A DNA stretch of 61,549 nucleotides, counting the filler, from Hausera hauseri (taxonomy: Eukaryota), in the NCBI GenBank assembly GCA_046269625.1. It is 10 parts of 10 records of this genome, joined end to end, with 100 filler letters (N's around TTAATTAATTAA, not from the genome) between each part and the next. Parts side by side here need not be neighbours in the genome. Positions count along the whole stretch, not along the records: positions 12,427 to 16,612 come from JBJURY010713326.1; 9 more parts are not named here. One strand, given 5' to 3'. The notes under the pieces were generated by a model. That model made no database searches. It saw only the letters and a list, made by a program, of their open reading frames with translations, and was not told the origin of the DNA. This document shows positions 12,600 through 16,612 of this stretch, in pieces (within the stretch, counting starts at the first letter, position 1; each line of letters starts with the position of its first letter). A program made the position numbers and the translations under genes.

Positions 12600-15500
12600 G
12601 AACTTTGGTAGTCCATGTACCACGTTTAATAGGCACTACACAGGTGAGTATGATTTGTCACCATGTACTATTTTGCAGAAAGAATCCTGGCTTAATTGAA
12701 CGAAGTGACTGTGCAGACCCAATTGTTTCGTCAGTCGGTGTGTTATCCAAATCGGTGAGTTTAAAGAGTGCACGAATTGTGGTACCAAAAAGTGCTTCAG
12801 TGAGTGCCCAACCGGTGGTACTAGACGGCGTGTTGCGCCAACCGAGTAAAGCAAAAGGGAGAATGGTTGTCAAATTCTTATGAGTTTCGGCCAGGAATTT
12901 TAACGAGATCTTGAGAGTGCTATGAAAGCGTTCTAATAAGCAGTTCGACTGGGGATGATATGTAGTTGTTATGTATGTGGTTTATGCCTAGTCGATTAAC
13001 TAAAGATTTGAATATGTTCAATTGAAATTGGGTACCTTAGTGTGTAATTATATAGCGAGGTGAACCGAACCGGCTAATCCAAATCCTTATGAATGCTTCG
13101 GCAATCGAGTCTATATTGATGGCGCGCAAAGGGACGGCTTCAGGCCAACGAGACGCACAGTCCATCATTGCTAAGGTAAATTGGTGTGCGTTATAGGAAG
13201 GTAATGGGCCAGCGATATCTATGTGAACTGACTCAAAACGGAATGTACATGGGAAATGGAATAATGGTGGTTTAAGATATTTAGCTACTTTGAACTTTGG
13301 CAAGCTACGCATTGCCTAATCCAGCTCTGTACGTCCGACCTCACTGATGGCCATGTTACGTGGCGTTTGACAAGGCGGAATGTAGCTTTGGAACCTGGGT
13401 GATAAAAAGAATGAACGTGTTGAAATGCAGTTTGTTGGAGAAGAGGTGCCAAAATTGGCAAATGTTGTCCAGATGCCGAAGTGTCCATGGCTATTCCATC
13501 GATGATTTGTACGGATTTGTACTGTTTAAGAATTTCAGCGGAAGGAGAATTTTGAATTAATTGTTCCTTAGAGAATATTGGTGTGACACTAATAGCACCA
13601 ACTGACCGTGATAGGAAATCAGCTATTAAATTGTCTGTGCCAGAAATGTGGCAAATTTTGAAGTTGAATGTTGACAGATATGAGATATTGCATTCTTGTC
13701 GCAGTAATGGTTGTTTCATGTTTATTACGTGAACGAGAGCTTTGTGGTCCGTTTGGGTAGTGAAGGAACGGGCGGTAAGCAAATGTGAAAAATGTTTTAG
13801 AGCTAAAACAATGGCCAGGAGTTCTCTATCGAAGGTAGCGTAACGGCGTTCTTGTGGCTGCAGCTTGCGTGAAAAAAATTCTAATGGCTCGTTTATACCT
13901 TTAGAAATTTGATAAAGAACCGCTCTACTGCTGCAGTTGATGCGTGGGTTGTTAAAATGAGGTCAGCATCAGGTTTTGGGTAAGCTAAAATCTCGACTGT
14001 TTTGAGCTTTTCGCGGATTTCATTGAACTGTTTAACAAGTTCTGGTGTCCAATATATGAGCTTTTTCTTCGGCCCTGCTCCTAGTTGAGCGAAAGGAGTA
14101 GTTAACTGGCTACAATGTGGGACGCATTTATGGACAAAATGTAAAGTCCCAAGGAAACTACGCATGTCAGTAGTGGTTTTTGGTAGCTCGATGTTTCGTA
14201 ACTGATGGATTCTATCAGGCTGTGAACTGTGACCGTCAGGTGTGATGACGTGACCAAGGATATTGGCATTTTTCTAAAAGAAGGAACACTTAGAAAAGTT
14301 CACTTGCAAATTGTAGTTGTGCAAGCGTTGGAAAACTAGTCTGAGATGTTTTTTGTGTTGTTTGGACGATGCTGATGGGACTAGTATGTCATCAATGTAC
14401 GGATATACAAATGGCAAGCCTGAAAGAACTGAATCAATATACCGTTGGAAAGTTTGTGCTGCGTTCTTTAAACCGAAGGGCATGAATGCGTATTTGAAAA
14501 GACCAAAAGGTGTTATTATGCCGTTTTTAGGATGTCTTCTGGTGCTACCGGTATTTGGTGGTAGGCTTTTTCGAGATCTATAGTCGAATAGATTGTTGTT
14601 TTGTGTAAGGAATGTATTATATCCTTAATCAAAGTAGAGGATAAGAGTCCATGGTAGTGACTTTATTAAGTTGGAGATAATCGCCGCATTGACGGAATGT
14701 GCCATCTTTTTTCGGGACGACGTGGAGTGGTGATGCCCAAGTTGATTTCTAGCGTCCATTTGAAAATGTCTCAGAATGGTGGTAAAGTGAATGAAACCTT
14801 AGAAGTGCCGAAAATACGTAAAGCTTGGCCGTTAGCTGTGTATCTACGCAGTAAATCGGCATTGTTAGTCTGGTTCACTCCTAACTTGTTTAATCGGGTT
14901 AAAGATGTTTGTAAAAATTAAGAGGGTTTTTCATTTCCTATTGTGTTGTCGTTAAAATATTTGTGGATAATATATAGAGATGGTTCCGTGATTTTTAGGA
15001 CTGAGCTAAAAAGTGTTTTGTATGGGTCACTGCTTTGGAAAATTTCAGACAAGTTGGAAAATTGCGACTTAATTTTGGGAGGTAGAAGTATCAGCAAGCT
15101 GTTTGCTTTAAGAAACGAGTCGACAACATTATTTGATTTCAACCAAGCTGCATGAAAGTCTAACCACGTCCGGCTGGATTGTTGCTTGTCGACGAAGTAT
15201 TCTACGCAAGGTAGATTTACAGTAGACGACGGGGGCAGAGGTGGATTTAACGGTACAGAAATAGTAGGAATGTCAGAAAAATCCTGTTGGTCCATAGAGG
15301 ATGCTTTTGGATCAGATCCACCTAGCAGACGGTAGTGTACGGTGAGTATAGGTGCTGCAGATGAATGGGTGTAACTTGTTATAATGTCGAATTGTCGAAG
15401 AAAAAATCCGTTATAACTAAGCCAAAAATTAGTCGGGAATGTTTCTCGTTGTAACACGCCATGCAAATGTGCGTTAGTTGCTGTTTGATGTATGTAGTAT

Positions 15501-16612
15501 GTACGTGTATTTATTTTCAAACAAAAGATTAAGGAAAATAGTTTTCAGATATGTAGGGTGCACAATGCGGTGCATAGGACACGGGCGCGTCCAATATCCC
15601 CGTGTTGTAATGGTTGGCCCGAGCATCTGGCCCTTCATTATTTATGACAGAAGTATTAACAATGAGACAAGGCGACTCACCAGAGTAATCCGATTCTGAA
15701 AAATTGCTGTATTTCCTGTGCAGTAGACTACTGTACCCTGGTTCCTCTGTTTTTGCAGATGGCATTTATGTTTTGTCGACATTCTTCGTGCTATACGATT
15801 CGGAACGATTTGATTCGGAGGGATCGATGTTTATCGGACTAATTAATCTAATACAATATTTCCCTGGTAGAAGTTTAGCTGATATTCTTTCCAAAAATAG
15901 TTTTTGAGCGGTAGATGTATCCAGTGGAGCATGTACACGGACGTAAACAGGTAAACCGATGATTTGTGCTGAAAACGAACCGGACTCGTCTTGCGATTCA
16001 TAATCGATGGAAGAAATTTAGATGCCAACATTACAGAGTAAGTTGTTGCGTCAATTTAGTGAAAAATTGTGCAATCCATCGGAATTGGCAGAGGTATTTA
16101 CTAACAGTCAATATGCCGACGGCCCCGTTTCGCCGGCTCATAAAATTTGGTTCGTGCAATTGGGATCGCATTATTTTATAGGCGAAGGGGTCATTAAAAA
16201 TGTCATTCGCGTCGAGCAATTCTAACAAAAACCTGTATCCAGCGACCATCAACATTGTATAGAATCGCAATATATCATCTATATCGGTAATATCCATGGG
16301 ACAATGGTTGAGTAATTGTATCAACTGTTTTCCTTCTTCAATTAATGCATTACACTTTTTAATAGCTTCATCATGGAAAATCCATTCATTCCCTTCTTTG
16401 CTTATTTCATTAATGAGGAGTCTATCAATCGGATCCTTCTGTTCCGTAATGCACCATTTAATAATCTCTGATTGTGAAAATTTTTTATCAGTAACTACAT
16501 ATCCAGATAGGAAGACCTGATTTTGATTAATAAGCTGAGATTCGTTGGAGAACGATGCTTTTAATTAGATCATACGATTCCGGTGGTTTAACGTATTTTC
16601 ACAATGAAAAAC
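12600..16612 (-). mobile_element. CsRn1-like Ty3/gypsy element (family B, copy 1): leader, Ubl-GG, gag, pol; internal deletions
   Basis: MPFGLKNAAQTFQR, YIDD, RNase H TDHK, integrase HPG..CVAC, HIDIAGPLP, RWPEAVPL; gag LLRRY jumps to protease TANGQ and protease FKWT jumps to RT WASPLHVV (two deletions). Confidence 0.9.
14918..15540 (-). pseudogene. gag: Ubiquitin-like domain (ends RLLGG at 15317) fused in frame to Gag N-terminal domain
   Basis: ORF 14918-15520: FWLSYNGFFL...ILTVHYRLLGG|SDP...PCVEYFVDKQQSSRTWLDFH..WL. Confidence 0.8.

Follow-up and report, generated by a model that had tools for sequence, protein, structure and literature searches.

Host deubiquitinases free the cargo of ubiquitin-ribosomal protein precursors, and the ubiquitin part aids production of the cargo. 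Retrotransposons with long terminal repeats (LTRs) are thought to mature Gag by their own aspartic protease, and accessory domains of Gag are rare. In cytopathic bovine viral diarrhoea virus (BVDV), cellular ubiquitin C-terminal hydrolases cut ubiquitin inserted in the polyprotein, creating the N-terminus of NS3 (PMC8310069). The CX2HX9CX3C (CHCC) motif is the published signature of one group of Ty3/gypsy elements, the CsRn1 clade, which occurs in trematodes and insects (PMC2582038). The paper on PwRn1, a member of this clade, describes its Gag as alpha-helix-rich and states that homolog searches brought up no relative among cellular or retrotransposon proteins; the word ubiquitin is absent from it (PMC2582038). 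The subject here is a Ty3/gypsy retrotransposon copy of Hausera hauseri (assembly GCA_046269625.1) in which a module resembling ubiquitin and ending in Gly-Gly is read in frame into Gag. It lies in a window of 61,549 nucleotides, which is the whole stretch of DNA presented (10 parts joined end to end, filler included). The piece analysed spans 12427-16612 of the window (JBJURY010713326.1), and the copy is located on its minus strand.

The open reading frame (ORF) at 14918-15520 (minus strand), open back to 15544, reads ...NFWLSYNGFFL...ILTVHYRLLGG/SDP... and continues in frame into a Gag-like core. The module identified below as a ubiquitin-like (Ubl) domain comprises 73 residues (15317-15535, minus strand) and ends in RLLGG; the Gly-Gly codons closing it, just after which the cut is proposed, are located at 15317-15322. 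A Pro/Ser/Thr-rich linker of 36 residues (15209-15316) connects the Gly-Gly to the N-terminal core of Gag (14840-15208, delimited by tblastn with relatives), which resembles Pfam DUF7041 and is interrupted by a premature stop (14918-14920). A phmmer search with the 206-residue ORF against 1.84 billion representative proteins gave 11 relatives. A word-indexed protein search added two members (P0015 and P0016) when started from P0008 and none when started from P0004; with the alignment, it gave two matches. P0001 and P0002 are 43-44% identical to the window ORF across module, linker and core, and P0003, P0004, P0006, P0007 and P0008, each a complete Gag of about 400 residues, show 29-35% identity. 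Ten diverged relatives share the layout of module followed by Gag core, with the tails RLLGG, RLCGG, KAYGG, SLSGG, KLRGG, RIRGG (two) and RLRGG; the gene model of P0009 begins at M-RLRGG. The core of the relatives matches Pfam DUF7041. Judged by these sequences, the resemblance of the module between the window and its relatives is not a matter of chance.

Searches with one sequence at a time were uninformative. A Pfam scan of the window ORF alone gave no ubiquitin-family match at E<=1, phmmer of the same ORF against Protein Data Bank sequences returned noise only, and an ESM Atlas search with the module had no usable match. The AlphaFold2 model of the single sequence was all-strand and unusable (predicted local distance difference test score, pLDDT, 51). 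A locus scan of metagenome contigs with P0003 was blank, as was a tblastn search of phage records, which is irrelevant here. The ubiquitin signal, absent in single-sequence searches, appears with family profiles and strengthens as members join (from 7 to 11 sequences). A 7-sequence profile had 124 matches in the Protein Data Bank at E<=10, 59 of the best 60 being ubiquitin, alone or fused, with the alignment in register between residue 9 and the Gly-Gly. With the 11-sequence profile, 218 sequences matched at E<=1, and the best 60 of the 218 were all ubiquitin or its fusions. Mono-ubiquitin was matched over residues 2-76 (E=0.006), ubiquitin-S27a fusions at about 4e-6 and a FUBI-type eS30 chain at 7e-4; the very low E-values of polyubiquitin chains are one weak match summed repeatedly and add no evidence.

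Given the 11-row alignment of the window copy and its relatives, AlphaFold2 produced models with pLDDT 72.5 (71-72.5 over five models). The predicted structure has strands at residues 3-8 and 11-16, a helix at 21-31, strands at 37-41 and 44-46, a turn at 52-54 and a strand at 63-68, that is, the strand-strand-helix-strand-strand-short turn-strand order of ubiquitin. Foldseek comparison with solved structures matched the model to the ISG15 C-terminal domain, ubiquitin, the Get5 Ubl domain, TBK1 and Elongin B (template modelling (TM) score 0.6-0.7, probability 1.0, best E=2e-3), with TM scores of 0.66-0.70 for ISG15, ubiquitin and the Get5 Ubl domain. VIA-align superposed 68-74 of 75 residues on ubiquitin, SUMO and ISG15 (Z 8.0-8.8, 2.3-3.0 Å). 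In a library of viral structures, the matches were BVDV polyproteins with ubiquitin insertions, giant-virus ubiquitin-like proteins and baculovirus v-ubi, with no Gag among them. The Gly-Gly of the module stands directly after the last strand, in register with G75-G76 of ubiquitin, and the LSYNG motif aligns with LIFAG of ubiquitin. The Lys48 column is Phe in the window (7-sequence profile alignment), and neither the Ile44 patch nor the Lys48/Lys63 pair that marks ubiquitin proper is found. Because sequence profile and predicted fold are independent and agree, they identify the module as a diverged ubiquitin-family β-grasp domain.

The conservation of the module is uneven. Mean pairwise identity in the 11-row alignment is 18% for the module, 16% for the linker and 34% for the core, and no column of the module is invariant (11/11 rows) except those of the two glycines. 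The module drifts fast yet keeps its hydrophobic pattern, its tail and the Gly that matches G47 of ubiquitin. Low identity combined with an invariant Gly-Gly fits selection that acts only on the fold and the tail. Linker length ranges over 15-37 residues among the relatives, and the residue after the Gly-Gly is Ser in five sequences (the window included), Gly in three, Asn in two, Met in one and never Pro. The original prediction, made from the DNA alone, had proposed a Ubl domain with a di-Gly end fused to Gag. Its letters, coordinates and in-frame passage from Ubl to Gag stand, as translation of the raw DNA gives one uninterrupted frame, and the domain is in frame with Gag in every relative that carries the module as well as in the window. 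Two further properties on which it had staked the idea, a β-grasp fold and conservation of the Gly-Gly, are supported by the family-based AlphaFold2 model, Foldseek, VIA-align and the family profile for the former, and by all 11 aligned sequences for the latter.

That prediction also had an upstream accessory leader from which Gag would be released, and this part is not supported: there is no conservation upstream, and the repeat ends at the start of the module. Homology to the closest relatives begins at the first strand of the module, both by phmmer and by tblastn. The upstream stretches of nine relatives are mutually dissimilar, except for one near-identical pair, and Gag ORFs that look intact have only about 17-36 residues ahead of the module. 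Where P0002, P0012 and P0015 extend far upstream, gene prediction has attached host-gene pieces, namely histone H2A, an Rrp44 cold-shock domain and a CNOT1 domain. A conserved leader was rejected on these grounds, homology starting at the module and the upstream sequences of the relatives being unrelated. As far as sequence can tell, the Ubl domain is the N-terminal part of the Gag precursor itself, a layout like that of ubiquitin-ribosomal protein fusions.

The boundary is also visible in copy number. Contigs of the one public DNA run that contains this DNA were mapped along the piece; no RNA run was found for it. Dozens of contigs cover Pol, 23-36 cover 15236-15355, 10 cover 15463 and 3-4 cover 15614-15814. 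Summed contig depth is as low over 12427-12566 as in the upstream flank, with hundreds of times more over pol, contig depth being a poor measure according to the tool. The repeat ends at about 15510-15545, exactly at the start of the module, and the copy is truncated at both ends. Because the contig count of the module is far above that of the flank, the module belongs to the repeated element and not to a host exon. The sequence beyond it (15545-16612) is low-copy flank outside the element, without homology to the relatives and covered by 3-4 contigs; the stop codon three codons ahead of the module lies there and, as the repeat stops at about 15510-15545, is therefore part of the flank and not of the element.

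We favour, with some reserve, the reading that Gag is made as a Ubl-Gly-Gly precursor that host deubiquitinases cut after the Gly-Gly. The precursor would consist of the diverged Ubl domain ending in Gly-Gly, a short disordered linker, a capsid-like core and two CHCC zinc knuckles. Host deubiquitinases, the normal cutters of natural ubiquitin precursors, would cleave after the Gly-Gly during or soon after translation, and the products would be a small ubiquitin-like protein and a Gag with a defined first residue (Ser, Gly, Asn or Met). The element would probably benefit from better yield and folding of the downstream Gag and from an N-terminus fixed independently of its protease; both natural and engineered ubiquitin fusions improve yield and folding of the protein downstream. 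Cutting by deubiquitinases is supported because the Gly-Gly is strictly retained exactly where the fold ends and the remainder drifts, because the tails mirror RLRGG of ubiquitin, because in none of 11 cases does Pro come next although the linker is Pro-rich, and because a precedent exists in pestiviruses. Junctions of ubiquitin with Pro are poorly cut. The features of a fusion precursor, namely a Ubl domain and its cargo in one ORF, a Gly-Gly junction and a residue other than Pro after it, are present in the window and in all relatives. Myristoylation on a new N-terminal Gly was also considered and rejected, Gly following the Gly-Gly in only 3 of the 11 members.

Several points weigh against processing by deubiquitinases. 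We infer the cleavage from the conservation of the Gly-Gly and from analogy. The confidence of the structural model is moderate, and Pfam scans of ten relatives as single sequences gave no ubiquitin-family match at E<=0.1. At the column of Ile44, the window has Ser, the family consensus Thr, and most members one or the other; many deubiquitinases and ubiquitin receptors use this position of ubiquitin, which is not kept here. In one member the Leu73 position is Ala (KAYGG). The independence of the relatives is judged by their divergence only. The closest relatives have no Met near the first strand that might serve as start codon of the precursor in the window's own family (family B).

The alternative that survives best is that the Ubl domain stays attached to Gag as a binding module. 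It would then recruit ESCRT (endosomal sorting complex required for transport), proteasome shuttle factors, or nuclear import or autophagy receptors, or it would shield Gag, in the manner of the Ubl domains of Rad23, ubiquilin and Ddi1-type proteins. We consider this rather unlikely. The fold is common to non-cleaved Ubl domains, and Get5, TBK1 and Elongin B are among the structural matches. Retroviral Gag proteins need ubiquitin for budding, and fused ubiquitin can replace late-domain function, which counts for a domain that remains in place. However, non-cleaved Ubl domains usually do not have a terminal Gly-Gly, whereas here the Gly-Gly is the sole invariant feature, placed at the end of the fold and next to a variable linker; the Ile44-patch position read by most ubiquitin receptors is not kept either.

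Less probable still is cutting of the junction by the aspartic protease of the element or by another host protease, with the Ubl domain an accessory piece like retroviral p12 or MA (matrix) and the Gly-Gly no more than a portion of a flexible hinge. Gag processing in LTR retroelements is normally the task of the element's protease, and the linker past the Gly-Gly is disordered and accessible, so far in line with such a site; but retroelement protease sites are not marked by Gly-Gly, and the tails (RLLGG, RIRGG, KLRGG and RLRGG, with basic or hydrophobic residues before the Gly-Gly) mirror LRLRGG of ubiquitin in register. An artefact, either a chance Gly-Gly or a host ubiquitin-like exon mis-joined to Gag by gene prediction, is very improbable: the gene models of several relatives are plainly chimeric (exosome and CNOT1 pieces in P0002, histone H2A in P0015), and single-sequence searches have no ubiquitin match and give a poor fold, but module and Gag form one uninterrupted frame of raw DNA in the window and the module is multi-copy along with the element, on which two grounds we reject the mis-joined exon, while the same junction recurs in 10 diverged sequences and the profile and fold evidence agree independently.

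If deubiquitinases do release Gag, the freed Ubl domain with its exposed Gly-Gly might be active itself, either as an element-encoded modifier that host enzymes attach to Gag or to host proteins, or as a decoy that occupies deubiquitinases or ubiquitin receptors and so protects particles. We give this extension little credence. Conjugation of the freed domain is speculation, because the residue matching Ile44 is Ser or Thr in most members. Were an active freed domain real, the element would carry its own post-translational tag, beyond a processing signal.

The remainder of the copy is a damaged Pol on the minus strand. The reverse transcriptase (14277-14790) is spread by frameshifts over three frames, as seen in a three-frame translation, with Pfam RVT_1 matching 14277-14483 (E=7e-16). 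The RNase H region of Pol is located at 13896-14273 (Pfam RT_RNaseH_2, E=5e-7), and the integrase, with its zinc-binding H2C2 domain and catalytic core, at 12661-13782 (Pfam Integrase_H2C2, E=4.5e-14, and translation); it too is frameshifted. The order RVT_1, RT_RNaseH_2, Integrase_H2C2 on the minus strand is the gypsy-type order of reverse transcriptase, RNase H and integrase, so the gypsy assignment that had accompanied the discovery of the module is borne out by the Pfam domains. No LTR-like direct repeats are present in the piece and there is no 3' LTR; the copy has neither LTRs nor 5' leader. A primer binding site for tRNA-Trp and a 4-bp target site duplication are further marks of the CsRn1 clade; a tRNA-Trp primer site pattern had no match in the piece at <=3 mismatches, the copy being without its LTRs and 5' leader.

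In tblastn with the relatives, Gag homology passes the stop at 14918-14920 and ends abruptly at 14840 (P0001 E=6e-48, P0004 E=3e-20), and beyond the point matching 14840 the relatives extend for about 180 more residues, zinc knuckles included. Because the homology crosses the stop and ends at 14840 while the relatives run on and reverse transcriptase motifs start about 50 bases downstream, the window copy has both a premature stop and an internal deletion. By this comparison, the deletion took the remaining part of Gag with its CHCC knuckles, along with almost the whole protease. The junction retains 22 unassigned codons (14774-14839, minus strand), which may be a remnant of the protease. Truncation at both ends, the premature stop, the internal deletion and the frameshifts make the window copy a dead one, itself incapable of the proposed processing.

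Because the window copy has lost its knuckle region, its clade was assigned through its closest relatives (P0001 and P0012), and by their sequences it appears to be a fragment of a CsRn1-clade Ty3/gypsy LTR retrotransposon. Two CX2HX9CX3C motifs are present in every gene model that is complete at the C-terminus (P0001, P0003, P0004, P0006, P0007, P0008 and P0012-P0015); P0002 has one such motif, and P0016 and P0009 end before the knuckle region. P0005 (314 residues) has the DUF7041 core and one CHCC knuckle without the module, and arthropod DUF7041 clusters (265-280 residues) are likewise without a ubiquitin-like module. Because these clusters are short and P0005 has no module, the module seems to be confined to a sub-lineage of the clade and would therefore have been gained or lost within it.

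Some gene models among the relatives are of interest in their own right. P0002 and P0012, with the Rrp44 cold-shock domain and the CNOT1 CAF1-binding domain, and P0015, with histone H2A, are annotation artefacts that fuse host pieces to Ubl-Gag; such chimeric models would mask the retrotransposon origin of the Ubl domain in surveys of domain architecture. P0010 and P0011 have an N-terminal domain like the Gag core, followed by leucine-rich repeats in P0010 and by a long Ser/Thr/Gly-rich region in P0011, and share the terminal motif IPPRG-x-DFATGG. Domestication of Gag as a host gene could explain them, as could chimeric gene models.

Two further stretches lie at the margins of the copy. The N-terminal 34 residues of the P0002 and P0012 gene models have a match at 12453-12553 (plus strand; 65% identity, E=2e-8), the reading frame shifting near 12518. 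The stretch is situated just past the end of the integrase on the opposite strand, and in P0002 the same N-terminus leads into the Rrp44-like cold-shock domain; an exon of the host, or a pseudogene, probably stands here next to the insertion. In the low-copy upstream flank, an open frame of 177 codons occupies 16034-16564 (minus strand) and may be an exon of the host; Pfam gives no family for it (best E about 0.1), and it has no homology to the relatives of the element.

A search of the literature found no description of a Ubl-Gag fusion; subscription journals were mostly outside its coverage, and an earlier description is possible. If the proposed processing is right, the Ty3/gypsy repertoire would gain a new accessory domain, and maturation of Gag would include a step that depends on a host enzyme and hence a possible point of host control through deubiquitinases. 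The element would be a natural, long-lived counterpart both of the sporadic ubiquitin captures of pestiviruses and of the ubiquitin-fusion trick used in protein expression. The Gag of the CsRn1 clade, the origin of which its describers could not trace, would receive its first recognisable part derived from a cellular protein.

Compared with the described elements of the CsRn1 clade (CsRn1, PwRn1, Boudicca, Kabuki and AgCR), the closest relatives of the window copy share the CHCC signature of Gag, there present twice, and the window has the Pol order of reverse transcriptase, RNase H and integrase. They differ in that the description of PwRn1 Gag mentions no ubiquitin (PMC2582038), the Ubl domain being seemingly a feature of a sub-lineage. 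The ISG15 C-terminal domain gives the best Foldseek matches (22-27% identity) and also ends in Gly-Gly; however, ISG15 is a two-domain, interferon-induced modifier of vertebrates, the sequence profile ranks ubiquitin first, and there is no evidence of descent from ISG15.

The precursors of ubiquitin-eL40, ubiquitin-eS31/S27a and FUBI-eS30 are alike in having a Ubl domain that ends in Gly-Gly directly before an unrelated cargo in one ORF, and chains of such fusions are among the best profile matches. They differ from the element in that here the cargo is a retrotransposon capsid protein, the Ubl domain is only about 15-25% identical to ubiquitin or ISG15, a disordered linker of 15-37 residues follows the Gly-Gly, and the cleavage is one that we infer. 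The BVDV strains Osloss, CP1 and CP Rit resemble the element in using captured ubiquitin as a processing signal that sets the downstream N-terminus, and BVDV polyproteins with ubiquitin are structural matches of the module. Their insertions, however, are recent and nearly unchanged host ubiquitin, acquired by sporadic RNA recombination within single animals, whereas the Ubl domain of the retrotransposon lineage is old, strongly diverged and fixed, and is located at the N-terminus of Gag and not inside a non-structural region. Ubiquitin fusion as a processing signal is thus known from cellular precursors and from pestiviruses; what the sequences suggest as new is its presence as a fixed, ancient feature of a lineage of LTR retrotransposons.

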